Assembly: GCF_000143415.4 (NCBI RefSeq)
Contig: NW_003314342.1
Location: forward strand, 395,569-459,568
DNA: 64,000 nucleotides
Source: Selaginella moellendorffii
Taxonomy: Eukaryota; Plantae; Lycopodiophyta
Direction: 5' to 3'
The notes under the pieces are model-generated. The model was not told the origin of the DNA, did no database searches, and was given only the letters and a program-made list of their open reading frames with translations. Positions 7,301-43,148 of the stretch are shown here, in pieces. Each line of letters begins with the position of its first letter. Within the stretch, counting starts at the first letter, position 1. Position numbers and translations under genes: made by a program.

Positions 7301-7341
<41 letters not shown>

Positions 7342-10543: not shown

Positions 10544-10636
10544 GACGAGGTAGAATTTCTCACTTTCATGTTCTCTAGTATGTTAACTTCACTGTACAGG
10601 AAAGCTGATGTACACTTCGCGTTTCTTTTCGTCTTT

Positions 10637-14375: not shown

Positions 14376-16333
<1,958 letters not shown>

Positions 16334-17237: not shown

Positions 17238-17849
17238 TCTTAATCTGTTTCAAGTGTATCACTCTAGATGTTTAATCATAAACACTATCACTCTCTAATG
17301 CTCATCCTATTTATCCTATGCAAGGATGCATTGATAAGCTAGAGAGAGTTAGCAATAATTCAACCTAAATATTGAAAAATGTCAAAGTTGTCATTTTCTT
17401 GTTTCGCCAAATTAAAATAGAAAATAATATGTAAGTATTATTGTTTGCCAATTCCAAAGATGAATTATAATGATCCTATAACAACGAAATGCTTGTTTTT
17501 TATAGTAAACCTTAATTTAATGCCTCCTAAGTTTATAGATTTTAAACTTAAACTATGTAAATCTTGTTATTGTCCTGTTCCTCCAAATTAAAACAGAAAA
17601 TAATATGTAAGTATTATTGTCTGCTAAACCCAAAGGTGAATTATAATGATCATTAGCACGCCCAGCAAATGCTGGGCTGTGCAAAAACTTCTGTCATGAT
17701 GCAAATGGTGTGTATATAAATGGTGTATGCATTATCAGATTTAATTTTTTGACAGTAAACTATACTAACACTTAATAAAATTATTAATCAAACCCATATT
17801 ATCTGAGAGAGAGCACGGGCAAATTATTTCCGGACAGAGAAGAAAGAAC

Positions 17850-18780
17850 CTGGCTTGGACAGCATTTGGGCATGGCACTACCCTATGTCATTTCTTTGGG
17901 TCCATAGCTCACTCCAGACACTAACTATTGTAGTGGAAAGAGGCTTTCAAGCTATAGAACAGAAGTTTTTTGGGACAGAGTTTAACAATGATAGTGTACA
18001 TTCTTTAAACACTTGAAATAAAAAAAGCTCGACACTCATAGAAGACTTTAGAGTCCAAATGTGAAATCTTGTTTGCAATTTTCTTTCCCAGCTTCAAGGC
18101 CTGATGTCTAGCCTTTATTTCAAAGAGCAGAACCTCAGTGGCGGTGGTGATAACCAAGTTCCGCCAGCCACCGTCACTGCCAAGGTGAGAAGAAGAAGAC
18201 ACAGCTCCATCTCCAGCAGTGAATGACGTGGGAAACCGAGCAGTGCCTGGTGTGAGCATGATAATCCAGCTCCCCATTCCAAAGATTCCCATGTAGCGCG
18301 AGACGCACCACCACCACATATCAATCATACCCTGGACAGACAAACATGAGAAGAAAAGCATTACAGCTGCGACAGCCCAGCTGTAGGAAAAGAGAATCTC
18401 CCAAAGTTGAAAATTTTTTCTTCTCCCACTCAGGAGGTAGAAAACTTTGTGACTGTTTGATATGGAATTGCTCTTGTTTTGTATGGAGATGATAAGATTA
18501 CTGGATCACAGCATTCAGCTCAGCCAGAGAACAAGACGTTGGACCCAAACTGGACGAGCTCTTTCATCACATCAAGAATAGGGAGATCTTACCTCACATA
18601 GCATTTCGTGCACTCCATCAATGCTCCCAAGCCCACAAGATCTCTGACTACCCACATTCCCGCTCAATCTCACCAATCATATAAATATAGTCCCATGCTC
18701 AAGTTGAACAAAGCCCTTAGACACTTCTCATATCAGCTTGATTTTTCCTGCAACCATGTTTACTGAGGTTAGCTCAAGCC
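17850..18780 (-). pseudogene. Degenerate exon-like fragments of an unidentified, possibly membrane-protein gene
   Basis: Higher-GC island between two AT-rich repeats, with splice-like sites and hydrophobic peptides (WEILFSYSWAVAA, MWWWCVSRYMGIFGMGSWII). Confidence 0.3.
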
Positions 18781-19159
18781 TTGGATCCAATGCCCAACGA
18801 CTTTATTGGTTTATATTAAATTTTAACTTAATAACTCTTAAGTTCTGAATGTCAAAGTACTATCCAATTTGGATAGGATCCATACTTCTATATCAGTAGA
18901 GCTTATTAATGTACCTATTCTTATATCCCAACAAGAACTTCTGATTTTCTTTATAGACTATTATCATTTAAAATTTTGTAACTTCTTAATCAAATTAAGT
19001 TAATAATCAGGAAAAACTATCAGCAGCTCAAAAGGCAAATGCAAGTAAAATATCTTCCATAAAGTTTAAGAAATAATACTACTCAATTTTAGAAAATATG
19101 TTTTAGTGTCTATAGTGCTTTAAATGGTAACTTTTTTTTTCTTAACATTTTATGTAAAG

Positions 19160-19603
19160 TTATATAGGAAAGAATTCAACATGGTATGTATTATTTCTAA
19201 TATAATTTCCATTAAATGCTCAATTTTGCCATCCATATCAACAATTTGTTTCAAATATTCCATAACCTTTAAATGTTACACCAAGAAAAAAGAATTCATG
19301 CAAGAAAAGTCCAAATTCATTATAAAGATTATTTTAATCAAAACTTCTGATTTTGAAATCTTTATATGCATATGCTAAGAGGATATTCCCATATGTATTA
19401 TACTTTGTTAATGCTTGAATCATATCAGACTTCCATTCATAATCATCTAAACTATGACTTTTATTATTACCTATGGTCTTGTTATGAGGATAATATTTAA
19501 AAATCAAATTCTTATCTGAGAGATAAATAGATGATAAAGATCTTTCATAGGTAGAATCAATCTTTAAGAAGACACATAATATAAAAATAACTAATAACTT
19601 CAT
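19160..19603 (-). pseudogene. Copy B of the small secreted-protein gene, with premature stops
   Basis: 444 nt collinear with copy A. N-terminus intact; TAA at 19334 and two TGG>TGA changes further downstream. Confidence 0.75.
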
Positions 19604-20140
19604 CCTTAATCCATGCTTAAGTGTATGTAACTCTAGATGTATAATAATTACAAAGACAATAACTCTCCAATGCTCATCCTATTTATCTGAGTTTTGAATG
19701 CAAGAATGCATTGACAGAAATATAACTAGAGAGAGTTAGCAATAATTCAACTTAAATTATAAAGCTTAAATGATGTCAAATTTGTCATTGTCTTGTTCCT
19801 CTGAAATTAAATAGAAAATAATATATAAGTATTACTATCTGCCAAATCCAAAGGTGAATTATAATGATCATTTTGCACTTTTGATTTTTGTATATATTAA
19901 ACCTTAACTTAATGCCTCTTAAATTTATAGATATTTTAAACTTAAATGATGTAAAAGTTATCATTAAAAAGTTAAATAATATGTAAGTATTATTATCTGC
20001 CAAAGATGAATTATAATGATCATTTTGTGCCTTTGATGACAAGGTGCTAATGCTAATGCCTGTAAAGTTCTAAATGTCCACCAGCCAGACTTACTATATC
20101 TAATTAAGGCTTTTCATTTTTTAAGAGGGAAGATTATAAA

Positions 20141-20207: not shown

Positions 20208-20526
20208 TCCAGAACTTATTAAGTATTTCTAAATGGAAAATAATTTTTTCCATGACAAATGTGGATGTTATTATTTACAGATGGTTAGACTGATTTTAAA
20301 AGTTCTTAATCCTATGAAGTTCATAACCAAGCAAAACTATCAATTTGTATTGCAATTCAAAAGGTAAATACAGTGAATGTTTCATAAAATTCGAGAAAGA
20401 ATATTACTAAATTTTAGAAAACTTAAATGAAAAATAAAGAAAACATGTTTAAGATGGTGAAATAAATTTTAATTTTAATTAAAAAATTGTATAAAACTGC
20501 ACAGCGGCTGCGTCGAAAGCAAATAC

Positions 20527-21974
20527 CTAGCTATCTCTGTACACCTCTGGCTTGTGGCCTTGCCAAAACCAGTTTGCTCTATACTTACAGTTACGGGACT
20601 TGGCCTCCGTGTTAAGTATGAGATTGACGAGTATGGGCTCTTGCGTCGGATTGACTATGTTGATCCACATCTTTTCCTTGACTCCTATTTGCACCATTTC
20701 GAATGACAGCGCCTGTCCAGGAATTAATGTTGGCTCGTTTTGATTTGCAGCCAAACCCGGCTTTTCGGATATCTCGCTGTCTCAACAACGTACGTACAAA
20801 GTTGGCCGCTGGCTTATTTGAGTTTTAAGCTGCTAGCTTCAGAGTTACCTTGAGGAGTGCTTCCACCATTCTAAGTGCCATCAAATCGTTGGTTTGTACC
20901 CAACTTCCTGCTTCATTGTCCTGCTTTGCAGCCTTGGTCACTTATGCTGCAGCTACTGACGATTCTTTTTCGCAAGTCCCTGACAGTTCCACGTTAGGAT
21001 TGAGAGCGTAGTCATGGAGCAACGTATTTCCAGGAGAATACCGTGTTATCCACGGATCGTCCAGCCTCTCCGGTGAAACTAGCATTCCGTGCGAAGCATA
21101 CTTTTCGTCCTTGTTTTCGAGAGAATTGCCGAGGGGAAACCATTTGCGAAGCAGCTGGAGACTTTATCCGTTGGTGACGACTCATCAGTTGCCGACGAGC
21201 AGAGGGCTTTCTTGTGAGAATCTCCAGGCCAGACATGCAGTTCCGTAATTTCGATGGCCTCTTCGTCCGGGTTGTAGAAACTTAATGTTCTCTGGATGAG
21301 CTTGCCTTGGACTGCTTCAGTATCTTCCAAGCTCGTAGCCTGATGAGAATTTCCGACAGCTTCGCCAATCACCAGCGTTTCGAGGCCTCCAGCACTGGTC
21401 TGGAAGAGGATCTTCCCGCTGGCTATTCCAGTCTTCCGGGGCAAGAACACAACTGCCACTGTCAGATTCTCGCCGGGAGCTACGACGCTTTTCTCGTCAA
21501 GAGCTTGGATAAAAAACTGCTTGTCTGTGCTGGTAGCCTGAAGAATTTTGATCCAGGAGCTGTTGTCAGTGTTCAGTATCGTCAGAAACTTTATCGACGG
21601 AGAGAAGAGGGCCTGCTGATTAAACTCCAGACTTCTGGGAACGACTGCGGCGTTGTCATTCCGCTGCTCCTCCAGAGCTAAAACTTGACACTCTTGCTGC
21701 GTCGGTGAGGCATACTGAAGAAATGATGCCAGCTCTGGAGGTTCCTGCTGCTGCTCTACTGAAGTGGTGCTACTGCTCTCTCCTGAGAATTGTCTGCACA
21801 CGTGATGGCAGCATCCAATTGTGATGCACACTTGCATCTGGACCTGTTTATTACGGTTGCAGAAGAGAAAGAAGTCCCTGCTCCTCTGTCGAAGATCTTG
21901 TGCTCTGCCTGCAGGGGAACCGGGCTCTGCACAAGAAGTAGCAGCAGCAGCAAAAACAGGTGTACAGTAGACAT
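20527..21974 (-). pseudogene. TMEM131-like gene, internally deleted and 3'-truncated
   Basis: Signal peptide MSTVHLFLLLLLLL; TMEM131-like Ig domain (PRSLEF..LTILNT..VAPGENLTVAVVFLPRKTG..LFQTSAGG). It then jumps to a much later segment (LSFEMVQIG..WINIVNPTQEP), with stops in between and no C-terminal half. Confidence 0.65.
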
Positions 21975-22903
21975 TCTTTTCGGGAAATCTGGCTTCTCAA
22001 CCTGAAACAAAAAGATTTGTAGATTCAGGACGAGCAGCACGACACGCAGACGCGGATTAAGAGAAAGACGGTGGTTGGTACTGCAAACTAAACTCTGAGA
22101 AAAATTCACGGGCAGGTGCAATGCATCTAATGTGATGACTCGTACTGGAGGGGATCTTATACAAAAGAATTGATCAGGCAGGCCAAGAAAAAAATCAACA
22201 AAAATGCCGCTCGAGGTACATGCAAACTCAGTTGACATTGTTAGAGTATGAGGAAAACTAGAGACTAGAACATGCTGCTGCCATCATACCTTACTGGTGG
22301 CTTACAACACGTACATCCAGCGCTCCAATTCTATAAGAACCACGATTAGAGAGGTACTGGAAAACGAAGAAAAAAAACTCAACTAAACCGGAGGAGGCGG
22401 CCGGCGAGGACCTGTTAGCTGTAACAATCCCAAAACGAAGCTGCTCAAACTGACAAGCCTGTCGGTAATGAAATACGGTTTGAAGTTTATTCCCTGTCAT
22501 CCTGATGAAAGCCGAGCATCATCCACCACTAGTCATCGATTGGATCAGCAACTCGTTTTTCCTTCCGAGTAGAGAGCGAAGGGACCAGCTGCTTTTAGGA
22601 GTCTTAGGACTGACGTGAGAACAGGAGACTTGCAACCTGCGATGCAAAGATTTCAAAAGAACAATTAGAAACGCCTCCACGCATTTCAACCTCGATTTGG
22701 CTTTTGCTACGGAACATACAAAAGTGTTTTTCAACCTGTAAAACAAAAGCACAAAGTAAAACCGGCTTCAAAGAACTCTAGCGTTTCAACCTCGATAGGA
22801 TGTTGCTCTCACTTACGGCACTTGCTAAAAGTTAAGAAGAAGATGTCACCTTTGTTGAAAGGTAGGAGAGGTTACTTGGCCTTCTTTCACATTATTCGAT
22901 CAG

Positions 22904-24200
22904 TCAAAATAGTTGCTGGGAAACGCGAATGGCCACCACTGGCCCGCCGACCCCAGCATGCATGGCATAGAACTTGACTTGCAAACCTGCACAAGTGTAG
23001 TTTTAATTCTCTACAACATCATAAAAGTCTTTTGCTATACGCACCGCCATTCTTTAGAAGATTGGTACATCCAGCCGCACCGAAGGGAGAGACGCGGCTG
23101 GTCGGTTGATAGTTCCCGTTCTCCGCGGTCCATGATTTGAAATTGAGAATGCCTGTGGCCCGCAGTAAACATCTGACAAAGAAAAAAAGAAAAGAAAGGA
23201 TACCTGAATTGGCAGTGTCTTTGTCGATCAAGCGCTTGTAATCGAACACTGCTCCAGCTGCGACGTCACAGTTTTCACGGATGTTCCTGACTCCGATTTC
23301 TTTAAAGGACCATGTTCTGTTCTGGTACTCTTCGTGCAGGAACAACTCCCAGTTGCGAAAGTCCAGTGTCTGCATTGTCCCTGCAAACAAGGCTTAGCTC
23401 ATCTACGAAGATAATGAAAATGTAAGTATTCTCCCAAACCAGGGCATGCAGGCAAGTTACAAACGGGGCAGCACATCATATGAAGATCTAGAGGGAAAAA
23501 AAAAAAAAAAACGGCAAAATGAAAGCGTCGTAAGAATAGATGAAGGGAACCTTGAACTGAAGCAAACCTGCGATCCAGATGCCAGGGAGCACGTTTGGCA
23601 CAAGGCACAATGCCGAGCTCTCATCGAGTTTTATCCTCTTTGACTTTGAGATTCGTTGCCAGAGCCTGCCAGCAGCGAGCGCCTTGCCGGAAACGAGCGT
23701 AAAAGCACCTATTCGCATCCAATCTAGAACAGGAAAACGTAACCATGGAATGAAAGACTGTATACGTAACGAGTACCTCGATGTTTCTCGCGTTCATGGA
23801 TGCTGTAGCTATGGCTTCCAGTGACTGCAAGAGACCGATCGCGTTAACATGGACAAGAATCTGTGAGACAACGAGTACATACCAAATGACGATCGATAGA
23901 GCTCTCTCCAGCTGAAATGCGGCCGAAATTTCGACGCCTCGCTGCCGATGCCGATCTCGAGCCGCTTGAGCGACAGCGCTTTCCACAGTCGCTCATCCAT
24001 GGCTATCGGCACGAAGAACCGCGCCGTGAGGGCGAGGCGCGCTAGATCGGCCGCATCGAGGAAGGTCGCGATGCACTCCCAGATGTCCGCATTGTAGCTG
24101 GAACAATCCAAGAACGATCGATTTCCAGAAATCGAGAGAGATTCACTCACAGTTTCTCCTGGAACGCGAGCTCGGCGCGGCGCTTCCTCGTCAACACCAT
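22904..24200 (-). CDS. F-box protein, RMF (At3g61730)/ZYGO1-like, multi-exon
   Basis: F-box DIWECIATFLDAADLARLA, FSWRELY, WMRIGAF, TLDFRNWELFL, and C-terminal LQVKFYAMHAG..VAIRVSQQLF. Confidence 0.8.
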
Positions 24201-24292
24201 CGCTGCTACGACGATAGGTTTACATAAGAGAGTTTAAACTTGGCCACGGGCGGGACAGGAAGTAATCCGAGCCGTTCGTCGGGCCGGCTGCA

Positions 24293-26715
24293 TTAACGGA
24301 CGAGATCTTGCATTACTTTGCGCTTCTTTTCTATTGGCTCCTTTGGGAAGCTCCAGCCCGCAAACTCTTCATTGTTGGAAAACAATGCGTTTGGGACAAC
24401 CTTGTAATAAGCTAGAGGAACTTGCTTTAATCTTCTCTTTGTCTGAAAAACCTTCATTAGCCACGAAAAAAAGCTACGCGCGAACACACAAAACTTACCT
24501 CCTCGTTGAAGATAGTAGAGTAGGATCCAGAACAAAAATCGGTGATTTGAACTTCCGTGGTCTTACTCTTGACGGTAAGATCAGCTTCCAGCGTGCTCAC
24601 AAATCTGGAAAAACGCTAGAGTTTGGCAGTTCTTTCGTTAAAGGACACTTCGTTACCTTGACACAGCAGGGCAGTAATGCCTTCGAAGTGTTTCTATTTC
24701 CCACAACGAACTCTCTGCAAACACAGAAAAGAAATGTAAAGCAATCACGAGAAAAAAGAAGAGCATTACCCAGAGCGCGGCAATTAGATGTCTTTTCGTT
24801 CGCAAGGTAGGGATCTCTTCCAAGCTTTGCGTCCGAGACATCTTCTTCACCTTTACTAGCAACTCGCAAACGAGAACTCTACAACGTGAGCGATCGAATG
24901 GTTAGTCTAAACTTTAAGCTGGAGTTAATACCTGATGAACAAAGCAATTTATCGAAGGATGCCGCCGAAGAAGATTGTGAACCATAGCTATCACCACTAG
25001 TGATCCTGCTGGCGATGCATGTAGTGACAAGCGACTTAATTTCTTGACAAACGCCGCGGCTAGATAAGCTGGCAAGAGTGGAGACTTCAAGCAGCTATCC
25101 ATCAACTGCAAGAATCTATAAACATTCCGTCGACGATAAGGATACTTTACGCGACATACCTCAAAAAATCGAGACCGGTACTTTGTGAAAAACATTGATG
25201 GCTCCAACAATGCGTACAGCTTCTCATAAAACTCAGGATACTCCAGTCCATACTTTGTCATCAGAATATGCAGGCTGTCTAAAGCCAAAACGCTGTAAAC
25301 CCCACCAAGATAATACCACTTGGTAAGAAAGTCACTGAGACAAACCGAGTTAGTCGATGTAGAAAAAAATAAAGTAAAATAGCATGGGGAAACCTGAGAC
25401 GTATTGGATTCGAAATTATAGAGAAAACGACCTTGGACATGTTAGCAAGCACCTGCAGCGAAAAGAAACTTTGTTCAAGGGAAGAAAAACTAGCAGCACG
25501 CACCATCTTATAGAAGTCAAGAGGTAGCGGAAGCTGTAAGAAATTTAACCACAGGTTTCTGACTTTAGATTTGAATCGATTGAAGGTAAACTGTCATAAT
25601 ACATACTGCTGATTAGTCCAAGGAAATTCTTCCAGAACTTGCTTCTTTATCCAAAGCGTTTTCAGTGATCTTCTTGTCTGGACAAACAAGCTCAGCCACG
25701 AAATCCAAGAAACAGTGTCCTTACGAGTGCTTAGAATTTCTTGAACGGAGGGCGAGAGACGTGAGATGACTCCATACACGTTACGGGTGAAGGTATCGAC
25801 ACTGCAAAAAGCTTCCTCAAGTAGCAACTTAATACGTTCACGCAACGCTACCTGACGCTCTTATCATCGTCGCTGGACAATGTAGCATCCACTCCTGACA
25901 ATTTATAGTGTCAGAGCTGCTACAGAGATACGAAACCTCTTTGGGACGTTTGAAGGCGAGCAGCCACAAGCTTCTCAAAGTTCTTCACAGTATAGAAGCT
26001 GAAGTAAAAGTTACTGTGTGGTTTCTAGCAAAATACTATGGGAAGCATACCAGAGAGTCGCATCCTTGCAGTGCTCAGTCGCAAACGCATCGAAAACAGT
26101 CTCACTCGATTTCCTTGTCAAAGCCGAGCAGAATTTGAAGTAGATTCCATTGTCCACACGACCATCCTTTGCTTGAAGCAACTCCATCAAAGAATCCAAA
26201 GCCGCATTCTACGTCCGAGAACAGCAGTTCTATGAAGAATGAAGAAGAAAAATACAACAGAGTGAAAACCTCGAGGCGATGTTCTTCGGTCCCAACCACG
26301 ATCGCAATGAGAAGCTCTATGAGCTCCTCAAACTTGTCCTTGAGCCAAGCTCTGTAGATCGCCTCGGCAGTCTCCGACGGTGCCGAGACATCACCGTCGC
26401 TCTGCGGCTTCCCTAGAACGCCCTGGGACGAGAGAATGGGCAGAAAGATCGAGCACACATTCCACAGACGAGGACGATCCAGCGCCGCGCTTGCAAAATG
26501 CGGAGACGATCGACAGGAGCGTGGAGCAATTGTTGACATTGGCCCTGGAGACGAGGAGCGCGCCCTCACCTCCTCCACTTTCATCAGGGAAGGCAAAAAC
26601 CCTAACTGGGGTTTATGAAAGATAGATGGCGGTGAGGAGGTAAAAGCAGAAGCCTTATGAGGAGGTAAAATCTTCAAAACTTTTCTTCTTTAGTTTTTCT
26701 TCGTTCGGAAGCCAT
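24293..26715 (-). CDS. NOC4: Nucleolar complex protein 4 (CBF/Mak21 domain), multi-exon
   Basis: [62 protein letters not shown]. Confidence 0.9.
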
Positions 26716-26742
26716 GAATCCAAGTTCTTTTACTTGTCGCAG

Positions 26743-27173
26743 GCGTTTGAGGCTCTGTTCAATGCGCTGGATCGCTGCGAGGATATCCTCTCAAAGCAGA
26801 GGTATCTGTGCGGAAACGTTTTCACCGAGGCAGATCTCCGGCTCTTCAAGACGCTGATAAGATTCGACGAAGTAAGCTCTGGGGTGTTTTTTTTCTTGCT
26901 TTCTCTCGAAGTTTTATTCAGATTCATTACCTATGCCAGGTTTATGTTGTTCATGTCAAGTGCAACAAGAAGCTGATCCGTGAGTACCCAAACCTCTTCA
27001 ACTTCGTCAAGGACGTGTACCAGATGGATGGGATCTCGGACACCGTCCGCATGGACCACATCAAAAAGCACTACTACGGAAGTCATCCCTCCATCAATCC
27101 GTATGGCGTCATCCCTGTTGGAAGCGTCATCGACTACTCCACTCCACACGACCGCCACAAGTTCAACACATGA
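26743..27173 (+). pseudogene. Last two exons only (26743-26871, 26940-27173) of a glutathionyl-hydroquinone reductase (GST Xi / YqjG / ECM4)
   Basis: [66 protein letters not shown]. It begins at a splice acceptor 27 nt from the NOC4 start codon. Confidence 0.9.
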
Positions 27174-27950
27174 GTTTTAGATTCCCAGTTATAATTGTCA
27201 CCTTCGATAATATATTATTCGTTTCTCATTTCTGCTTTCTCTCTTTTGCTTTTTACGCTTTCACGATGCAGTGTCCTAAGGATCAACCAATGCCAGATCC
27301 CATGCAAGTGGATGTGCAACTAGCCAACCAGATGTACTTCAGCAATCTTCAACATCTTTGTGATGGTCTTCTGAGATCTTGGAGATAATATGAACCATTG
27401 GTTTTGATTCCTTTCACTCTTGTAATCAGTCTTGTAGATTCTTGAATTAATCTTCAATTATTACATGCTTTCAAGGCATTAAACCACAATGTAAGTGATA
27501 CAAGTTGATTTGCTTGTCACTCTTGGTCCCTCTAGTCTTGCAGCATTATGCAATTGTTTCTTATGTTGATGTATTTGTCACAAAATCAAATTTTTATATC
27601 ACAAGAAAGTTGAGCTTGATACATTATTTAGCACAAAAGGCACCCAAATAAAGAAAAGCCTTTACCAAAAGGGGTATTAGATCATTAAAACCTTTTCTTT
27701 TTTAGAGAATATACTAAAAAGGATATTAAAGAGAATTTAGCTAGATGGAATGCAATGTTGAAGAATAAAATTAAAGTGTTACGATTATATAGGAGATATA
27801 TTATACTACATATGAAAAAATTATATTTAAAATTTATTATAAAAATGTAAAATTGATAATTTTATTATTTATAATTATTATTAAATTATTTAATGCCTGC
27901 TTGTTTTCTTTAAATATTCTAGGTTTTCTTTTGGGTTGTGTGCAAGGAAA

Positions 27951-28784
27951 ATGGCTGTGGGCTTTCAAAACCAAGGGAATTCTTGTTCAGCCAACAGTGC
28001 TTTACAGTGCGTTGCTCACACGCCGGAGCTCTCTAGCTTAATCGAGTTTAGGAAAGTGGTGAGGGCGATTTGGAATAACGCAAGCAAGTCTGTAAAACCA
28101 GGGCCAAAGCTGACAAATCCGAGCGTCCAGCAGGACGCACAGGAGTATCTCGATTTTCTTTTGGGTGCCCTGGATCAAGAATTCAAGAAGCAAGATAATC
28201 CTCCTAAAGGAAAAAAGGTGCGACCAGAGCTCCCCTCTCCAGTCGCAGATTTCTTCGAGGACCAAACCAAATCCACAGTGAAATGCCCCAAGTGCTCCAA
28301 CATGGTCTCCTCCACGCCTGAATCTTTCACCTCTCTCTCGCTGCCAGTCCATGAGACGGCGCAGCCGGTTTCTCTGGAATCATGCATCCGGGAGTACACC
28401 AAAGACGATGTTTTGGACTCCTGGCACTGCCCAAAGTGCAAGAGAAACCAAAAGGACGCTGTCAAGAAACTGGAGCTTGGGAAGCTCCCACGGAATTTGA
28501 TCCTCCATTTGGCAAGGTTTAAGTGCGATTCTTCGGGGAGTGTGGAGAAGATCGACACCACGGTGGAGTTTCCACAGATTTCGACACTTTGGGAACAGGA
28601 GTACAAACTGTATGGATTGATTAACCATATGGGAGACTCCGACTATGGGCACTACACGGCAACCATCAAACTTCCAAATGGAAAGTGGTACAGCTTTGAC
28701 GACGAGGTGGTGGAAGAGATTTTTGAGCCATCGAGGTGCTCGAGCGATGCATACATTTTGTTCTATCACAAAACAAGTGTGTGA
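27951..28784 (+). CDS. Intronless minimal ubiquitin-specific protease (peptidase C19)
   Basis: Cys box GFQNQGNSCSANSALQC, QQDAQEY, two CPKC zinc-ribbon pairs, LPRNLILHLARF, His box GLINHMG..GHYTA, WYSFDD, AYILFY. Confidence 0.9.
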   Translation: MAVGFQNQGNSCSANSALQCVAHTPELSSLIEFRKVVRAIWNNASKSVKPGPKLTNPSVQQDAQEYLDFLLGALDQEFKKQDNPPKGKKVRPELPSPVADFFEDQTKSTVKCPKCSNMVSSTPESFTSLSLPVHETAQPVSLESCIREYTKDDVLDSWHCPKCKRNQKDAVKKLELGKLPRNLILHLARFKCDSSGSVEKIDTTVEFPQISTLWEQEYKLYGLINHMGDSDYGHYTATIKLPNGKWYSFDDEVVEEIFEPSRCSSDAYILFYHKTSV

Positions 28785-28800
28785 GAATTACAGTACATAT

Positions 28801-30312
28801 TTACACGATATCTTGGCTTGCGTCTTCTTGTCGCGCTGCTCTTGTTCTACAGCTCCAACATTCCAGGAGGAGAGCATTCACGATCATGGACAATCCGAAT
28901 CCCGCAAAACCGGCCAGCGAAATCGACAAGATTGGGTTCAACTTCATCTGGATCATGGATTGAAATAAGAGCTAAAAAAGTTTTAAGAGAGTGATCTTAC
29001 CCAACTGTAGAAAACATGCGCAAATCGTATGACAAAACCGACCTGAAAGATGGCAAAGAGCCACATACAACGCCGCCTCACTGTGCGTCGAAAGAATCTA
29101 TTGTTACAAACAGGAGCTCGAGAGAAAGAGAGAGAAACGAAATCTTACCAAGCGTTGATGCTGTGATGGCAGTGAGCATTCCAAACATGACGGCGAATGG
29201 CAGAGCTAGCATCAATGCTCGAGGGCCCTTTCGTCTCACTTGTAGTAGGCAACAAAGAAATCCATCCAAGAACTTCGCAAATCAATCGAAATCATCAGAG
29301 AATTATCACCAGTAGCTGCTCGAGGAGGCAAAAGTACGTGAGCATGCTGATCATGACGAGCACGGGAACGTCATGCCAAATCCTGGAAGAACACCATGGA
29401 ATCTACAAAACTATAGAGCGAGATGGACGAATCTACCTGTTGAGAGCACTCATTTGCGCCATTTGAGCTTGCTGGAGAACTTGAGTTTCAGCGTTGATAT
29501 TGTTTTGGTTTTGCTGGAGCCTGACGAGCGTGACGGGGAGATTGACGACCTCCTGGCCACAAACATCGCACTCGCGGTTGCCTCGAATCCCAAACCACTT
29601 GAGAGCGCACTCCTCGTGAGCCAGCGCCAGCTTCCATTTGCAGCTACACTCGAGCTTGAGCGTCTTGCCCTCCTCGCCCAGATCGCACAGGCAAATGCGG
29701 CACACTGCTTCCTCCTCGGGGATCTCCTCGTCCTCGCCGTCTAAAAGTTTTGAAACTTTCAGATCATGGAACCATGGTCTCCATGAACTTGATCATAGGA
29801 AGCTTACGTACCTTGGGTGTCGTTGGCATGGTCAGTGTCTTGGGCTCCATCGTCTGCTTGTGAAGTTTCCCGGGGACAAGGACGAGGAGTGGTCGGCTTG
29901 ACGAGAAACGTTCCGGAGTAAAGCCGGGTGAGCTTCTTCTCCTTTTGGTGACCATCGAGCGCCGACTTGGAGCGTTTGATCTGCTTGCCCTGCGAAGACG
30001 AGATGACAAAGTTGACGATGAAAGAAAGAAAGAAAAGTTCTACCTTTGATGACGAGATCAAATTTTCTCTGATGCATCTGGACTCACTGCCCCGGCCCCT
30101 GTCGACGAAGAAAACGACGGAGACGCGGACGAAGAAGACGATAGCGTGAATCGCAATGGAAGAGACACTATTCTTGCGGAGCGGGGCGTGAGGAGCCGCA
30201 TGAGCGAGAAGTTTGATCGGGGTGTTGCTGCTCCTGGCGTGTTGGAGATGGATGGCGGTGGCGACGGCTGCGGCGGAAGACCATTGACGCAGGAGTCAGC
30301 TAAGCTATCACC
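28801..30312 (-). pseudogene. RING-CH (RINGv/MARCH-type) membrane E3 ligase lacking its 5' exons
   Basis: [26 protein letters not shown] plus TM exons (WHDVPVLVMISMLTYFCLLEQL). It starts at an acceptor with no ATG exon, has CKWKL where CKGEL is expected, and has a probable frameshift near 30060-30110. Confidence 0.75.
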
Positions 30313-30334
30313 TGAAAGAGATAAACAAGCCAAC

Positions 30335-31249
30335 CTTGTGACAAGTAGATATAAAACCACGGGAACGGCCGTAAAGCCTCGTTGGAGAGCAGCAAAATTG
30401 AGAAGCGATGGTGCCAAGTGACCAGCCATTTTGTCAAGGCTGCAAAGAAAATGGAGCTGAGAAGCCATAAATGAATCTCAAAAAAAACGAACCTGTTACT
30501 TATGCTCAGTAACGCTGCAACACCCAGCATGAGGAGCGTCCCCTCTTCCCTTTTGCAAACTTTAGAACAGGAAAAGCAAAAAAAAAAGAGAGAGAAAATC
30601 TTTACCATTGAATCTGTGGCCACCAGGAAGAATTCCCTCCAGGAATCGCCACCGGAGGGGAGTTGTTCTCACTGAGATCCAGCACGACACCATCGCCATC
30701 GGTGGAAAACTTTGGGACCTTGTCACAAGCCTTGGACGAGTTCCAAGGAAGCAAAGGAAGAACCGAGACGATCTTGCCCGGGGGCTCGTCGGATTTCTTC
30801 ACCTCCACCTCCGCCGGGTGATCCAGCGCGAGGAAGTAGCCGCCGAGAGTGACCACCACGATTCCCATGAGCCCCTGCGAGCTCGGGAGCTCGTTGATGA
30901 TCACATAGCTCGTAAAAACCAGAAGAACTGGAGTGAAAGCTAGATAAGGAACAGTGACCGAGAGAGGGGAGACGTGGAGAGCACGCTGGTACATGAACCC
31001 CACCAGAGCCTTGATCGCCGCGGTGACGAGGAGCGCGGCGACGTACTCGGTGTCCAGCCGCGTCAAAGAGAAGAGATCGAAGCCGCCGGAGAGGAGCGCC
31101 ATGGAGGAGAGGAGCAGCGCGTCCAGGAGAGCCACCAGAGCTACGAGCTCGCGGTCCGAGAAGCGCTGGGACGCCCATTTCCTGCTGGCATCGATGCAGC
31201 TGTGGCCGATCGCGGCGCCCGCGGCGTACGCGAATCCTGCCCAGATCAT
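30335..31249 (-). pseudogene. EamA/DMT-family transporter lacking its 3' exons
   Basis: Multi-TM ORF with YQRALHVSPLSVTVPYLAFTPV..NELPSSQGLMGI. The second EamA repeat breaks off after LDKMAG..VVLYLLVT. Confidence 0.75.
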
Positions 31250-31578
31250 TTCTCTGCTCTTCTCCGGAGCGAGCGATCGATCGATCGATCGATCGCTAGG
31301 ACGATCGCTGCATTGTCGGCGAGGGCGCGATTGGTGCCACCAGAATACCTGCTCGGTTGACAATCACAGCATCGCGGCTCCTCTGCCTCCGGGGACGACC
31401 TTATGGAGACCTAATTCGCCCTAATTTCTTTTTTTCTCTCTTTCACAAGGGATGGGTGAGTCTTTTTTCATGAAAAACTCTTCACCGAATAACAAATAAT
31501 GTAATGAACTTGTTCCAAAAACAAAATTACTTCTATTCACTAATGCTTTTCATTTATCATCCATTTTTTGCTGATTGA

Positions 31579-32595
31579 TCAGCATTTAAGAGTTTGAGCA
31601 CCTCCAAAACCAATGTGATTTGTGGTGAATGTGAGATTGTCTTGATTTCGAATTTTACGCACTTCGTCCTTCCATACAAGCATTGCTTGTTTCTTTTCTG
31701 TCATAGATGCTTCCTCAATTTCCCGCTCCAACTCCATGGCGAAATCATTCTCCTCATCTACTACTGGGATGGGAAATTCTTCCTCCATTTGCCGCACCAG
31801 CTCCATGGCAAAATTGTTTTGCTCCTCGCCCAAATCGAATCGGGTGCCCTGGCCCTGTGGGTTGCTGAACTCCCCGCTGAACTCCTCAAGACCCAGTAGT
31901 AAATCTAGATCATCACCTTCATCGACATTGAAATCCTTGAGAAAGTTCTTCTCCTCGTCCTCCACGGAAGGACCCTTGTCCTCCAAATCCATTTTACACC
32001 ACAATTTCTCAACCTCCTGGAAGATCTCCTCGTCTTGCACGTATCCCTCGAGGTCACAGGCGTTGACTGGCAACGACTGATCCCGGACCACGAGTTGACT
32101 AGGGCATTGACCTGTAGTGCTTGGTGATGGCCTCGGCGTTCTCCTCGAAGCTCCGGGACTTGCCCTGCGCGGGGATGCACAACCGCGACTCCCACTGGTT
32201 GCGGCCGATGGAATCATCGACGAAGGCAACATCTCGCGAGGAAGACACTGCCCCCTTGACTTGTTCTGCTGCTGCTCCTTCTTGGGTCTCTTCCTTGGAC
32301 GACCGCCATCTTCTTTCTTGGCTCGTTTCGCTCGTATTGTGCCACCCAGGGTGAAGTGCCGTTTGCACACCGTGCACTTGTAGCGCGGCTGGATCAGCAT
32401 GTGGTTTTCGAAGTAATCAAACTTGGTGAGTGCCGAGCTATCGCAGCCGTGTGGGCAGAGTGGGTGCTGCTGTCGCAAGAAGGCCATGAGCTCCCCCACG
32501 CTCCCAAACGTAACAAAAGCCTGCTGTGATGTCTGTGAACCAAAGACTGGGTAGTTTTGGAGATGATGGATGTCCTTGACTAGCACGTCTCTCAT
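31579..32595 (-). CDS. Divergent Dof-type zinc-finger protein, intronless
   Basis: CPHGCDS..TKFDYFEN..QPRYKCTVCKRHFTLGGTIR aligns to the Dof consensus. Followed by an NLS (RPRKRPKK) and an acidic C-terminus. Confidence 0.8.
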   Translation of the reverse strand: MRDVLVKDIHHLQNYPVFGSQTSQQAFVTFGSVGELMAFLRQQHPLCPHGCDSSALTKFDYFENHMLIQPRYKCTVCKRHFTLGGTIRAKRAKKEDGGRPRKRPKKEQQQNKSRGQCLPREMLPSSMIPSAATSGSRGCASPRRASPGASRRTPRPSPSTTGQCPSQLVVRDQSLPVNACDLEGYVQDEEIFQEVEKLWCKMDLEDKGPSVEDEEKNFLKDFNVDEGDDLDLLLGLEEFSGEFSNPQGQGTRFDLGEEQNNFAMELVRQMEEEFPIPVVDEENDFAMELEREIEEASMTEKKQAMLVWKDEVRKIRNQDNLTFTTNHIGFGGAQTLKC

Positions 32596-32649
32596 TTCTC
32601 TCTTCTTACTGACTTACCAAATAATCTAGGTATGCTGTTAAGGGCGATG

Positions 32650-32722
32650 AAAATATACTTTACATTTAAACAAATATTCTGATACGGTACCAGAATATTT
32701 GTTGGAATGTAAAGTATATTTT
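32650..32722. repeat. 73-nt near-perfect palindrome with 36-nt arms
   Basis: Left arm aaaatatactttacatttaaacaaatattctgatac vs reverse complement of right arm aaaatatactttacattccaacaaatattctggtac: 3 mismatches. Confidence 0.9.
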
Positions 32723-33391
32723 ATGAGTAAAATCTGCGCAAGGCCTCATGGCAATGCACAATCCATGAGGCATTCTGTTTTAACTTAAACTTCTCTGAAA
32801 AACTTTTTAAGGCTTTAGTACGGAATGATGACTCCGAGACTTTAGGCCACTTAATCCATGTCACTAGCCCACTACAAGATTATCTGCTGGATCAGATTTC
32901 CTGCTGATCCATATTACAACAAGGGCAAAATCTATTTTGTTTTTGTCGTGCAGGCTAGCACAAATTCGTGCTGGGCGGAGCAGCAAGAGCAAGCTGGTTG
33001 TGGCGAAATTCAGCTTAAACCAAAAGAGGTGGATTCCTGAGAGATGAGGAGAGGTGAAACTTTCAGTGACTGGCAAGAGGTGACCTTTTCGTCTGGTTTA
33101 AACCAAAACTAATCTATTGTTTATTCAAACCTTTATGGAGGTAAGACTCTTTAATATTTTAGAAACTTTTTCAAATGTAAAGTAAAAGTCATGGCATATT
33201 TATTTTCTACCTTATACATTGTGGTGAAAATATGCTTTACTAGAACGACGTTTTCTCTTTTTTCTCTTTAGGAGCGAGAAACGTTATTCCTTTAAACTAG
33301 CAAGGCGATGGCGGCAAGCATTCTAATTCCCTTTCAGAAGAATTCCCAAAAGAGGGAAAATCCTGCATTTCTGGGATGAACAAGCTGACAG

Positions 33392-33984
33392 CTAGAAGCT
33401 CCTCGTCCAAAACTCGCTAAAAAACCTCTGAACCATGGCTCGAAAGACGGGGCAATTGAGCAGCATATAGTAGCCCAGAAATTCCTCCAAGTCCACCAAA
33501 TCATCAAAGCTGTCCGCTACAACCATCTCCACCACTTCGTCCCACCTCGATTTGAGCTTCATAGCCTCACTGCGCTGCACGCCAGGATGCGGTGACAAAA
33601 TCTCCTTGCCTTTGCCATGCCCAAGGTTCTCCGCATCATTCTTGAACGAGAAGCTGCTGGACGAAGCCTGAGAGTCCTCTAAGTTGCGGTGGACGACTTC
33701 CTGGCGATCTAAAGCTTCCGTGCAGCTATCACTGTTCTTGAGTTTGCTGTGCTTCCCGACTTCTTGAGCTTTTGCTTCTGCTGCTGCCTGTATGCAAAGC
33801 TCGCTGTCCAACTGATCCTGTGCTTGTTGCTGCTGCTCTTCACCAGCACCCCACGAGTTGACGACCTTCTACCGATGAGTTTCATCCGCTTCAAGAGATT
33901 CTTGCAAACGCTCCGGAACTTAATGCACCAAGGAAAAGAAACCACCCGTAGCGTCCCATCGGCAGCCGTCATTTCATGAACCAT
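33392..33984 (-). CDS. OVATE family protein-like gene, possibly frameshifted
   Basis: C-terminal VVEMVV..DLEEFLGYYMLLN..MVQRFFSEFW resembles the OVATE domain. The ATG-bearing ORF (33709-33984) is in a different frame from the domain ORF. Confidence 0.55.
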
Positions 33985-34292
33985 CCTCCTCTGCTACTGA
34001 CCAAGATGTTGATTCTTTCAGGAGAAACGTTTAAGTAGGTGGCCTGGCACCTCTGACTTCCCCCACTCCATTTTTTAGCTCACATCGTCGCATGAAAGAG
34101 GCCTACATGATCAGCTTCGTGCCGTCCACGCACATTGATCCGATGACGGTCCTGTGCATGGAAACAAGTCAGTGCTGTTGCCATTTATAATAGAACACTC
34201 ACCTGACGTTCAAACAAATGCTTCCAATTGTCAACATCTGACACGGTAAAAAAAACATAGGAAGAAAAAAAAACAGTGAAACTTATGGGTAG

Positions 34293-36068
34293 TCAAGCTG
34301 CTGCAGCTTTGAGCGACGCCAAAGCGCTCGCTTCGTGCTGCATCTTGAGCGCATTCACAAAAATTTCCAGACCAATCCCCTCCATAATTTGCTCAATCGC
34401 GTGTTGCGTCACTCCCACTCGACGATCAGTTACCCGACCTTGGGGAAAGTTATACGTTCTTATGCGCTCCGATCTGTCGCTTGAGCCGATCTGGAGTGAC
34501 AATTTATAAAAATGGAAAAAATAACGTTCTGCGACAATAAACTGAATTACCTGATCTTGTCGTAATTCAGACCGACTTGCCGCTGCTCGGGACCGCTCGA
34601 GCTCGTACAGCCTAGCATATAAAATACTCAAAGCTTTTGCTTTGTTCTATACAATCTCAGCTCAGTTGTAGCAAAGCACGCGTGTTGAAGGGCCTACCTT
34701 GTGTTGAGAGCGTTCGTCTTGGATTGCGACCACGATACCTGTTGGAGCGTGGGTAACTCGGACTGCGCTGCAGGTAGTATTTACATGCTGTCCACCGGCT
34801 CCACCAGCTCGGTAAGTGTCTATCTTTATCTCGTCATTACGGATCTCGACATCAATCTGTCAGCATAGTCAAACTTCAGCAACAGAAAAACGAGAAAAAG
34901 AAACATGTATCAATGGTCTATGCAAGTGCAAAGGTTTAGTAAACCTGGAGTGAACCTCATTCGCTTCGGGAAGAATAGCGACTGACGCAGTACTTGTGTG
35001 TATACGCCCAGCCTTCTCAGTGACAGGAACACGCTGCACACGGATGCATATAAAAAAATGAAACCACGGTAATTACTTTCGTACCTGGACGCGATGAACG
35101 CCACTTTCGAACTTAAGAGCTCCATAAACACCATCTCCAGATATTGCAGCACTAGCCTCCTATAAAAACAAGCTTAGATACGCCCGTGGAGAACCGGATA
35201 GTTACCTTGTAACATCGGGTGTCGGTGGTAGTAATGCTCAGAACTTCAAACCTCCATGAGTTGTTTGCAGCATATTTCTCATACCTGAGAGCATTCATAG
35301 AAATCTAATAAGCATTCGACATGAACCAGAAAGACGTGCCTACATCTTGAAGAGATCAGACGCAAAAATTGACGCTTCGTCACCTCCAGCTCCTAAAAAT
35401 TAGATAAAACATATCAAACATCAAGCACATCAGAGAGCACTTGCCTGCTCTGACTTCGAGAATACAACCTCTGCTATCAGCTTCATCCTTAGGAATAAGC
35501 TCCAGGAGAACATCGTGCTGAGCATCTCTCACTTCTCTGGTGGCCGTTTGAAGTTCTCCAGAGGCCAGCCTACGCATTTCTTCGTCTTCAACGGACTCTT
35601 TTACCAATTCTTTCAAGCCAATTACTTCCTGCATTCAACCAAAGAGTCTCTTTTTTCCAAACTTTAGACGTCAAACCTTTTCTTTGGCTCTCAGCGCCTT
35701 GATCATATCCACGGAGTAATCCAGATTGCGAAGCTCCTTGTTCATCTTGATGAGCTTTTCTGACGCAATCCCAGGCTGAAATCATTCACGATCGTATTTT
35801 CAAGGACGAAATCCGAATCTACACTTTACCTCTAGAAGCGCTTTGGAAAGACAAGCATGGCGGTCTTCAATAGAGCTCATTCTCTTCTCCAAAATTCGCA
35901 AAATATCGTCGGGAATGGGCGCATGCTTGTCTGGAGATAGAAAATCCATGTCTCCAATCCACCTACATTTCGCAAGAACATACCCATGAGCGTGGAATAC
36001 AAGCTCCTGCTTCCCAGATTCCACGCCGGGAGACGCCATCGCCATCGCCGGGCAGCTCCCAGCATCAT
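34293..36068 (-). CDS. prfA: Organellar (probably mitochondrial) peptide chain release factor 1, multi-exon
   Basis: [30 protein letters not shown] (PxT motif), [25 protein letters not shown]. One GC-AG intron with its donor near 35444. Confidence 0.92.
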
Positions 36069-36238
36069 AACCCTAAAAAACAGAGCCCAAAGTAATCCAA
36101 ATCGAAGTAGAAAAGAAATGCTTGCCACGTTGCGGGCAACAGGAAGTCAATCTGGCGGCTCTCTCCGTCGGGATCGCCAGAGGATCACTGAGATTTGCCG
36201 CTCAGATCCAGAAGAGGCGATTTGGAGCTGGACGAGCG

Positions 36239-36451
36239 ATGGGAAAGACGGCGATCGATGAGACATCGACGGATGGGGAATTCAAGCGCACCGAGTCATC
36301 GTTTCGCAGCTGGATTTCTAGCAAAGAAGGGTGTGATATTCCGGCCGTGGCCGATAGGTACCATCTCTACATCTCGTATGCGTGTCCCTGGGCTTCCCGG
36401 TGCTTCGCTACGCTCAAGCTCAAGGGCTTAGACCATGCTATTGGCGTCACG
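36239..36451 (+). pseudogene. First exon only of a glutathionyl-hydroquinone reductase
   Basis: MGKTAIDE..GEFKRTESSFRSWI..RYHLYISYACPWASR with the active-site CPWA. Donor at 36452; the expected following exons are absent. Confidence 0.9.
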
Positions 36452-36872
36452 GTATGTCAAAGAAATTTCCTTCTTTCTTTTGGAAGCTAGAAGTGATGGA
36501 GTGCCAACCACAGAGACAATAGACGACGATATAGAGCGAATAAAGAGGAATGGGAAGCTCTAGAGCACCCTTCGCTGGAACTTTTCTCCGTGAATTTACC
36601 TCTGTGTAGCTGGTATAGTATATATATAACGAAAACTCATGGAAGTCGAGACTCCATAGTTGAATTCTAGTCTTCTACGTTGCTAGTGACCCAGGGTAGT
36701 CAGCCAAAGGCCACCTCGGGATCACTCCATAGCTATAGCTTTCTAGAGGTTTTTAGAGTAATATTAAGAACTTGGGAGCTCAGGCAATCTAGCGATCCAA
36801 AAGAGGACGCACACTAAAGAACACTGGAAGTTTCTTAAAAGAGTTTCTTCCCTCTGTTCTTCGTGATTGACA

Positions 36873-37466
<594 letters not shown>

Positions 37467-39359: not shown

Positions 39360-39660
39360 TCCTGAAGGTATGATCTTGTTTCTCTAAAAATGTGGGATCG
39401 ATATAAAGCAATAATCACGGTGAGTTTTTCTCTTTTCCTTCTTGTTTGGTTCTTTCATGATTTTGGCATGCTAGTTTCGTAGTTTGGATCGACAATTATT
39501 GATTCCAGGTCTAGGCCTGTCCAGGTTTGGAGTTCCTTCCATGAGGTTAAGAACAGCAGAAGCCAGAGAGATTTGAAAATAACGTGTGGTGGTTCTTGGA
39601 TCTAAAAGACGTTCCTCGAGGAGGTTAGTTGCCTTTTGGTCTGTTTTCTTTTGTTGTTTT
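39360..39660 (+). pseudogene. Degenerate, deleted fragments of an NDUFAF7 copy
   Basis: Matches 14541-14582, ~14647-14728 and ~15251-15358, including intron sequence. Confidence 0.8.
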
Positions 39661-40450: not shown

Positions 40451-43148
40451 CTAGCTATTGACATTGTTGTTCCTTTGCGCGGCCAGGACTAGAGACATGC
40501 CGCTACGACAGACCTGCTCTATAGCTCTGCCATTTTCCACTGTATCAACTTGTTGCGGGCGGTATCGTGGCCTTTCGGTCTTGCAAAAGAGCCAGTCGAG
40601 TCCATTCAGCACCATGAACGTACCAATGCCGCCGATCAAGCCATAAGCAATGGAGTACGTAAGAGGCATGAGGATGATGGTAATGAACGCCGGGATGGCT
40701 TCTCTCATGTCATCCCAGTCAATCTCCTTGACGGACTTCACCATCAAAACTCCGACGAGAACAAGCGCCGGTCCAACTGCCCAAGGTGGAATAGAAGCCA
40801 GCAGCGGTGTGAAAAACAGCGCCAGGAAAAAGTACATCGCCACAGCAAGAGCAGTAATCCCGGTTCTCCCACCTTCTCGAATTCCCGTGGACGACTCGAT
40901 GAAAGCGGTGACAGGGGAAGTTCCAAGTGCCGAGCCGACCACGATTGCTGCATCGCTCATGAAGCATCGCTCATCGCTCGTCGGCTGCAGGGGAAGTTCC
41001 AAGGCCTGTTACCCCAGAGTTACTCACCCACTCTGGCGGTCCCTGCGGCATCTCGGACTGCTCGCTGGTCTGCTCCAACGCCACCATCCCGGCACAGCGC
41101 TGCTCGGGCCTCACTCCCGGCGGTACACCGCTCACTCTAGTCAAGCCAGGTGCCGAGTGCAAGGACCCAGGGGCCCAGAACAAAGGATACTCCGACTGCC
41201 TGGACCAGACGAAGCGTGATCTCATCGTTGCCACGGCAGCTTCCTCGCTCATCGGCAGTGTCATCATGGGAGTCTTCGCAAATCTCCCGCTCGGGCTGGC
41301 GCCTGGGATGGGAGCAAACGCCTACTTTGCGTACACCGTCGTCGGCTTCCACGGCTCCGGAAGTGTCTCCTATGGTGGAGCTCTAGCGGCTGTGTTCGTC
41401 GAGGGACTGATCTTTCTCGGGCTGGCAGCACTCGGCCTCAGGACTCGGCTGGCCAAGGCCATCCCTCGCCCCGTCCGCATCTCCAGTGCGGTTGGTATCG
41501 GTGTCTTCCTCACCTTAATCGGCTTGCAGTCGAGCGAAGGCGTCGGGCTCATCGTCTTCAGTCCGTCATCTCTGGTGACGCTGGGTGGATGCCCGGCAGT
41601 GGACCGAGTAGCGGTAGCACCGGTTGTCACCAACACCACAACCGGTGTCTCCCGTCTCATGCCCGGCGGTACCATCTCCTCTAACGTCCTGTGCACGCGT
41701 AACCGGATGGAAGATCCCACTCTCTGGCTTGGGGTCATCGGCTTCGTCATCATCGCATATGCTCTCGTCAGGGGTGTCAAAGGTGCCATGATCTACGGCA
41801 TTGTCTTCGTCACCGGCATCTCCTGGTTCCGGGGAACGAAGGTGACGTACTTCCCAAATACCGACGCTGGTAACACGGCCTACTCGTACTTCCGCAAGGT
41901 GGTCGACGTTCACACCATCAAAGGCACCGCTGGAGCTCTCTCCTTTGCTGAAATGGGCAAGAGCCAGTTCTGGGTGGCGCTCATCACCTTCCTCTACGTC
42001 GACATACTGGATACCACCGGAACTCTCTACTCCATGGCCAAGTTCGCCGGCTACGTCGACGAGAATGGCAATTTCGAGGGGCAGTACCAGGCCTTCATGA
42101 GCGATGCTGCAGGGGGATGCTGCAGGGGAAGTTCCAAGTGCCGAGCCGATGAGCCAAGCCTTCATCACTCATCACTCATCACGTAGATCATGGCACCTTT
42201 GACACCCCTGATGAGAGCATACGCGATGATGACGAAGCCGACGACCCCAAGCCAGAGAGTGGGATCTTCCATCCGGTTACGCGTGCACAGGACGTTAGAG
42301 GAGATGGTACCGCCGGGCATGAGACGGGAGACACCGGTTGTGGTGTTGGTGACAACCGGTGCTACCGCTACTCGGTCCGCTGCCGGGCATCCACCCAGCG
42401 TCACCAGAGATGACGGACTGAAGACGATGAGCCCGACGCCTTCGCTCGACTGCAAGCCGATTAAGGTGAGGAAGACACCGATACCAACCGCGCTGGAGAT
42501 GCGGACGGGGCGGGGGATGGCCTTGGCCAGCCGAGTCCTGAGGCCGAGTGCTGCCAGCCCGAGAAAGATCAGTCCCTCGACGAACACAGCCGCTAGAGCT
42601 CCACCATAGGAGACACTTCCGGAGCCGTGGAAGCCGACGACGGTGTACGCAAAGTAGGCGTTTGCTCCCATCCCAGGCGCCAGCCCGAGCGGGAGATTTG
42701 CGAAGACTCCCATGATGACACTGCCGATGAGCGAGGAAGCTGCCGTGGCAACGATGAGATCACGCTTCGTCTGGTCCAGGCAGTCGGAGTATCCTTTGTT
42801 CTGGGCCCCTGGGTCCTTGCACTCGGCACCTGGCTTGACTAGAGTGAGCGGTGTACCGCCGGGAGTGAGGCCCGAGCAGCGCTGTGCCAGGATGGTGGCG
42901 TTGGAGCAGACCAGCGAGCAGTCCGAGATGCCGCAGGGACCGCCAGAGTGGGTGAGTATGCTGGCGTTCACCGCGAGGATATATGCCATCGTGAGGAAAG
43001 TTGCTGTGCCGGCTCTCACCTCTCGAGTGAAGCAAGAGTTTCGCTCCTCCAGCTTGAAATACCTCCCGACTCTGCTCCGAGCGACTGCCATGTTGAGGTG
43101 ATCTATGCCTGAGTTCCATTGCTCGCTCAATCTCCTGATAGAATCCAT
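40451..43148 (-). pseudogene. AZG1: AZG-type adenine/guanine permease (NCS2/AzgA) broken by an inversion-duplication
   Basis: 5' part 43148-42182 (-): [35 protein letters not shown]. Middle part 41021-42112 (+): DILDTTGTL. 3' part 40964-40451 (-): [30 protein letters not shown]. Confidence 0.9.
41021..42958. repeat. Inverted repeat, arms 41021-41797 and 42182-42958 (777 bp each), 384-nt loop
   Basis: Arms are reverse complements with about 7 mismatches by eye. The ORF track shows mirror ORFs on opposite strands. Confidence 0.95.

Follow-up and report, generated by a model that had tools for sequence, protein, structure and literature searches.

A circularly permuted seven-gene block in Selaginella moellendorffii shares its internal join with a tandem duplication at the donor locus

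Introduction

Gene blocks that reappear at a new site in circularly permuted order have been described as duplications by way of extrachromosomal circular DNA (eccDNA). The cases are the colour-sidedness translocations of KIT in cattle (Durkin 2012), a Zygosaccharomyces segment in wine yeast (Galeote 2011) and human examples, as far as they are covered by the summary in PMC7188851. It is recognised that tandem duplications can mimic the signature of a circle, and cases with a nearby duplication were excluded as false positives (PMC7188851). Genes of plants are also moved by the patching of double-strand breaks (Wicker et al. 2010, in the form in which it is cited in PMC6097286). A deletion with templated filler is the footprint of end joining by polymerase theta (TMEJ) in Arabidopsis (PMC10923293), and fillers mark repair of the synthesis-dependent strand annealing type in barley as well (PMC3706897). 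Here we analyse a permuted multi-gene block in the lycophyte Selaginella moellendorffii. It lies in a stretch of 64,000 nucleotides of contig NW_003314342.1 (positions 395,569 to 459,568), called the window, and the coordinates below count from the first letter of this stretch. An earlier reading of the letters (the sequence-only reading) had taken the permutation as the signature of a circular intermediate, and had named a slice copied across a tandem-duplication junction as an alternative.

Results

The block and its intact donor

The block occupies positions 26644-36493 of the window and contains seven genes in about 10 kb, with the gene order and strands that the sequence-only reading had described. 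The genes were identified by Pfam (GST_C, GST_N, UCH, RINGv, EamA, Dof, Ovate and PCRF), where the Ovate match of 24.1 bits was slightly below the cut-off of 25. The scaffold of the window is GL377646.1 (890,268 bp; GCA_000143415.2), on which the USP gene at 27951-28784 is recorded. The predicted donor, with the order EamA-Dof-OVATE-RF1-GHR-USP-RING, was found intact on GL377590.1 (locus L002), where EamA, Dof, RF1, GHR, USP and RING are called whole and the counterpart of OVATE is an open reading frame (ORF) of 244 aa between Dof and RF1. In blastn comparisons window 26644-30285 corresponded to L002 7953-12372 and window 30287-36493 to L002 861-7282, with an identity of 95-96% (approx. 95% when gaps were counted). 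Compared with this donor the block is circularly permuted, as eccDNA duplications are. Donor positions 7283-7952 (670 bp), comprising most of GHR intron 1, exon 2 and most of exon 3, are missing from the block. Thus both GHR pieces come from one gene and not from different paralogues, and the permutation is real. The donor alignment also bore out that three genes, GHR, RING and EamA, are broken. The boundaries had to be moved: the left end, placed at ~26720 before, is at 26644, where the block takes in the last 21 nt of a GHR exon, and is preceded by a 16-nt filler; the internal join is at 30285/30287 (not ~30320), and the right end at 36493 (not ~36470).

No transposon ends, the lack of which had been pointed out already, and no tandem repeats or target-site duplication were found at the block boundaries. 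The similar end motifs AAGCAGAAG and AAGCTAGAAG were considered as a target duplication and rejected, as both are donor sequence and are missing in the allele that lacks the block. A gene-capturing transposon (Pack-MULE, CACTA or Helitron) was dismissed because of the lack of terminal inverted repeats and target-site duplication and because the ends differ between the copies, and a retrocopy because introns and spacers are kept and genes stand on both strands. No genes for mobility are carried by the block, which does not qualify as a mobile element.

A tandem array on the other donor haplotype

The assembly, which we take to carry both haplotypes of a heterozygous plant, contains haplotype pairs with 1.5-2.6% substitutions over collinear genes, which fits this assumption. 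Five USP copies are present on four scaffolds, and two USP proteins map to GL377568.1, the other donor haplotype. There the locus L008 has the order Dof-RF1-GHR-USP-RING part, followed by EamA part-Dof-OVATE-RF1-GHR, and the array continues past a long terminal repeat (LTR) insertion into USP, a whole RING and RPS8 (L001). The loci L008, L010 and L001 overlap exactly and make up 42 kb without N. The array is a head-to-tail duplication, in situ, of donor 861-12372 with a unit of 11,512 bp; the presumed count of two units and an intact EamA presumed upstream of unit 1 are taken from the USP cluster, which lists only two proteins on GL377568.1.

Over L008 5310-18570 the array is collinear with the window block, and a single high-scoring segment pair joins L008 9876-18570 to window 27827-36493. 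Because of this collinearity, the block can be derived from the array without any rearrangement. The novel join, which in an eccDNA duplication would be expected to be missing from the donor locus, is present in identical form in the GL377568.1 array. Thus the permutation fails as the signature of a circular intermediate, and a circle is now only one possible route. The alternative of the sequence-only reading found its template in this array, with which the block is collinear from end to end.

An LTR-type family with TG...CA ends, terminal repeats of ~175 bp and a 4-bp target duplication (window 56742-61382; L008 6932-9777; L001 to 9830) has inserted into the AT-rich spacer that separates GHR and USP in each of the two units. 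The elements of units 1 and 2 are independent insertions about 45 bp apart, each with its own target duplication, so dating of the events by these elements was abandoned as uninformative on their order. The unit 2 element contains a nested younger element, the 1,151-bp repeats of which are 98.5% alike.

The internal join and a probable chimeric transcript

The join at 30285-30287 reads CATT-G-ACGC, that is the RING side, one extra G and the EamA side. Base for base, including the extra G, the identical join is carried by the array (L008 12372) and by a second dispersed copy, L003 (12362). Both breaks had been expected in introns; this was correct for EamA, which is broken within a 60-nt intron, 12 nt upstream of the acceptor, while RING is broken in coding exon 2, after codon 66.

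Four runs, all of assembled contigs, were compared over window 25600-31500. Run X6 is from a separate study of 2019 and appears to be RNA-derived, as its contigs skip introns. One of its contigs contains a GT-AG joint 30267->30335, with a shorter side of 28 nt, just below the 31-nt rule of the tool. The corresponding chimeric intron (30268-30334, minus strand, 67 nt) links the donor site of EamA with a cryptic acceptor inside the RING exon. Judged from the sequence, such a joint could come only from a join-bearing copy, whichever of these loci that may be. The chimeric EamA-RING product does not keep the frame and meets a stop after 32 codons. Among the four runs no contig bridging the left junction was listed in the stretch compared (the right junction is outside it). 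The loose ends of X5 and X6 at 26644 run on into intact GHR, which is the donor form. In runs X1 and X2 a loose end of the LTR family described above at window 27732 suggests a third insertion there.

The insertion site and the scars at the ends

An allele without the block was located through a NOC4 exon search (locus L007, GL377608.1), while a search for the allele via PPR found none. L007 is collinear with the window for about 20 kb on both sides. A 1.1-kb deletion, which is derived in comparison with the intact NOC4-peroxidase loci L005 and L006, is common to L007 and the window, so that L007 represents the state before the insertion. Comparison with L007 indicated that 70 bp of host DNA was replaced by the block and revealed no target-site duplication. 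At the right end there is a microhomology of 1 nt to the host. At the left end a 16-nt filler (26628-26643, plus strand), missing in both L007 and L002, separates the host from the insert. The final 11-12 nt of the filler are a copy of window 26658-26669, 14-25 nt inside the left end of the block. The host end together with the start of the filler matches RING exon 30246-30260 in 14 of 15 nt, 25-40 nt from the join (0/100 shuffles); this match was found after the fact, and chance matches of similar length occur. A collinear chromosomal template, and a host deletion with filler and microhomology in place of a target-site duplication, are among the features by which break repair is recognised, and these were found. 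The end scars tell how the ends were joined but are silent on the nature of the template, chromosomal or circular.

A dispersed copy of peroxidase-NOC4-F-box-TMEM131, decayed but not permuted, makes up the host region itself; its intact originals (L005, L006) are on GL377604.1 and GL377685.1. The left flank (20500-26627, minus strand) consists of the decayed dispersed copy of the NOC4 - F-box - TMEM131-like genes, and the right flank (36494-37461, plus strand) is a 5' remnant of a class III peroxidase, which is the neighbour of NOC4 in the originals. This host gene copy is present on both haplotypes (window and L007) with differing deletions, and the block is an insertion within an older insertion.

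Some further rearrangements were seen around the site. A 777-bp inverted duplication (99%) at window 41021-42958 disrupts an AzgA/AZG purine permease, the allele of which at L007 5178-6920 is an intact gene of 580 aa, and the rearrangement is specific to the window haplotype or to the assembly. At 39360-39660 there are scattered fragments of an NDUFAF7-like methyltransferase, the gene of which is at 14343-16333, with a 93-bp repeat (89%); they are also present in L007 and are probably another captured gene piece. At 16777-20040 the window has a direct duplication of 2.3 kb, which is AT-rich, contains internal repeats of 176 bp and is also present in L007.

A second dispersed copy

The copy L003 on GL377599.1 consists of donor 8817-12372 joined to 861-3903 by the same join; it is 6,599 bp long, which is 57% of the unit, and is situated amid unrelated genes. 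Its outer ends differ from those of the window copy, within the span of which its own span is nested; on the donor the outer ends are 4.9 kb apart in case of L003 and 670 bp apart in case of the window copy. L003 was not copied from the present window block, since it retains stretches of 36 bp, 63 bp and 670 bp that are lost in the window, but copying from an earlier state of the window block is possible. An empty allele of the L003 site was searched for and not found.

Relationships of the copies

The copies differ from each other by 0.9-3.2% in a nearly star-like pattern, and the join-bearing copies are about equally diverged (1.2-2.9%). If the block is a linear slice, unit 1 is the expected source of its left half and unit 2 that of its right half, while in case of a circle popped out of the array one switch of ancestry is predicted, with both GHR ends from one unit. 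In the RF1-GHR part, the window copy differs by 1.2-1.3% from the array units and by 1.9% from the single-copy haplotype. At four RING sites beside the join, unit 1 goes with the window and L003, and unit 2 with L002; this distribution shows a single origin of the join under any model. Fifteen single-nucleotide polymorphisms (SNPs) and five insertions or deletions (indels) unite the two units against all other copies. We read this as a probable exchange of sequence between the units after the dispersed copies had left.

The genes of the block and their fate

The 3' part of GHR (glutathionyl-hydroquinone reductase, an omega-like GST), assigned by Pfam and donor alignment, lies at 26644-27173 on the plus strand and comprises the final 21 nt of exon 3, exon 4 (26724-26871) and exon 5 (26940-27173); the intron at 26872-26939 is spliced out in run X6. 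The USP gene (UCH family by Pfam) at 27951-28784, plus strand, is a single-exon ORF of 277 aa, which has a private in-frame loss of 12 aa but keeps its Cys and His boxes and an open frame. It is followed on the minus strand by the 3' part of RING-CH (RINGv; 28801-30285), which lacks the first 66 codons and in the window copy has a further 1-nt loss at 30073. Of the EamA transporter gene the 5' part is present (30287-31249, minus strand), with exons 1 to 3 and 48 nt of the intron after them. The Dof zinc-finger ORF (31579-32595, minus strand, 338 aa, Pfam) is open. The OVATE-family gene (33300-33984, minus strand) is frameshifted, with deletions of 22 bp and 16 bp. The peptide release factor RF1 copy (Pfam PCRF) is at 34293-36066 on the minus strand, the upper coordinate being approximate, as it was mapped from the donor, and GHR exon 1 with the first 42 nt of intron 1 closes the block (36239-36493, plus strand), the 1-nt microhomology at its end being a G.

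With three genes cut, OVATE frameshifted and the chimera out of frame, no new function is evident, and the dispersed copies are now decaying. In unit 1 of the array most of OVATE was lost at L008 2158 (donor 4169-4764) and in unit 2 OVATE is frameshifted, so that the GL377568.1 haplotype may have no working OVATE at the locus. The frameshift was rejected as a mark common to the window and unit 2, since the deletions differ (22 bp vs 7 bp). Upstream of Dof a near-perfect palindrome of 73 bp (window 32650-32722; 36-nt arms, 1-nt loop) is present in every copy. An acidic repeat of 90 bp (30 aa) occurs three times in the Dof gene of L002 (2410-2683), the single-copy haplotype, and once in all other copies.

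Discussion

Tandem duplication first, followed by the patching of slices into breaks, is the explanation towards which we lean, if without great confidence; here and below the weight given to an explanation is a matter of judgement and not of computation. In the first step the 11,512-bp donor unit, from the EamA intron to RING exon 2, was duplicated head to tail in place, as the array shows, and the new RING|EamA join with its one added G bears the mark of end joining or of a homology-free restart of replication. In the second step, the outcome of which is visible at the site, a double-strand break would have occurred at an unlinked position between the NOC4 and peroxidase remnants and would have been patched with a continuous 10.8-kb copy spanning the join. 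The left end would have been primed by several short microhomology steps, leaving the templated filler, and the right end joined through 1 nt of homology, a footprint suggesting synthesis-dependent or polymerase-theta-type break repair. Set against the single-copy haplotype such a slice looks permuted, because its start lies in the GHR gene of unit 1 and its end in that of unit 2. In a third step a break on another scaffold may have taken a 6.6-kb slice over the same join. Since the host region is a non-permuted dispersed copy, the capture of linear gene slices does occur at this very site.

Several points weigh against the copying of linear slices. The slice in the window is 10,842 of 11,512 bp, or 94% of the unit, a length that is expected of a reopened circle and not specially of a linear slice, and the join is contained in each of the two dispersed copies with USP that were found. 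Of the informative RF1-GHR sites five go with one unit and five with the other, in alternation, the units being homogenised, and because of this homogenisation the direction of copying was deduced by parsimony. For the same reason the ancestry of single segments is uninformative and does not separate circle from slice.

A tentative alternative, which we consider somewhat doubtful, is the heritable capture, at two unlinked breaks, of a seven-gene circle of 11.5 kb that was either shed by the array or formed de novo and then also gave rise to the array. In its better version, a one-unit circle recombined out of the 11.5-kb direct repeats of the array, was cut in GHR, lost 670 bp at its ends and was captured in a break; the circle would then be real but secondary, the join being inherited from the chromosome. 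We regard this as rather unlikely. The length of the slice suits it, plant tandem repeats shed circles by homologous recombination (PMC2543021), this way of transposing genes has been put forward for Arabidopsis (PMC2869330), and filler and deletion suit the capture of a free molecule as well as copying (PMC10923293). However, in case of L003 a loss of 4.9 kb from the 11.5-kb circle would be needed, and where one switch from unit 2 to unit 1 is expected along EamA-GHR, the sites alternate. Flanking direct repeats such as PMC2869330 describes are absent, that paper calls reinsertion exceptional, and no circular molecule was observed in the data, which are assemblies and contigs.

The other version, in which the circle arose de novo from the single-copy donor and one lineage of it inserted here, on GL377599.1 and, by homologous recombination, at home, seems improbable to us. 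The similar divergence of the join-bearing copies fits a near-simultaneous origin, the blunt join with one added base fits circularisation by end joining, and the slice is again close to one unit. Three heritable integrations of one transient, non-replicating molecule would be needed, though, while a chromosomal array is a lasting source; moreover, the window copy should pair with one unit at each position with a single switch, but the 15 SNPs and 5 indels pair the units with each other.

A single template-switching repair that built the join at this site (host to RING end, to GHR, to RING, to EamA), with the array and L003 derived from it or formed in the same cell, is very improbable. The match of the filler start to the RING exon near the join would suit it, but this match is post hoc, its 10-mer core also occurs by chance at 49205, and matches of 10-11 nt to the unit are common in other flanks. 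In addition, an array in situ made from a dispersed copy needs two more template switches, and L003 retains sequence that the window copy has lost. Least credible of all is an assembly chimera of tandem-array and NOC4-region reads: although all loci come from one assembly and no listed contig bridges the left junction, the window copy has its own substitutions (1-3%) and private disabling indels against every other copy, there are no N gaps, the filler is in neither parent, the empty allele shares the derived host deletion, and the internal join is present in three scaffolds and an independent RNA-type run.

The locus is a clean example that a permuted multi-gene copy is no proof of a circular intermediate; if only one donor haplotype had been checked, it would pass for a textbook eccDNA insertion. 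Donor, array, two recipients and an empty allele together show the spread of a gene block in a genome without a recent whole-genome duplication, and a chimeric EamA-RING transcript appears to be spliced in the same genome. If a circle was indeed involved, this would be a rare heritable integration of multi-gene eccDNA in plants; it would parallel, in a lycophyte, the serial KIT translocations of cattle, with source array, single-copy allele, two recipients and the empty site all in one genome. Unless a circle is shown the mechanism is ordinary, but the case is real and unusually complete.

Pack-MULE, Helitron and CACTA transposons carry gene fragments to new sites. Unlike in these, the ends of the present copies map base for base to donor genes, and those of the two dispersed copies are unrelated. 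Compared with the cattle, yeast and human eccDNA cases, within what their summary in PMC7188851 describes, the efghij-abcd order relative to the donor, the one novel join at several loci and the different outer ends are alike, while here a chromosomal tandem duplication at the donor carries the identical join and the circle itself was not detected. The false-positive example drawn in PMC7188851 also differs in detail from the window case, as it involves a deletion after the duplication. With the excision of circles from tandem duplicates (PMC2869330; PMC2543021) our case shares the tandem source and a copy near to one unit. In the model of PMC2869330, however, the circle inserts by homology and leaves flanking direct repeats, whereas the window insert has no such repeats and has end-joining scars. 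The likeness to plant break patching lies in the multi-gene slice at an unlinked site, its arbitrary ends within genes, the 70-bp deletion, the templated filler, the 1-nt microhomology and the lack of a target-site duplication and of transposon termini. Unlike in the usual cases of patching, the template of the window copy was probably a tandem-duplication join, hence the permuted order, and the same join was exported at least twice. The block is best filed as a new case of gene movement by break repair, with the join of a tandem duplication as the probable template.

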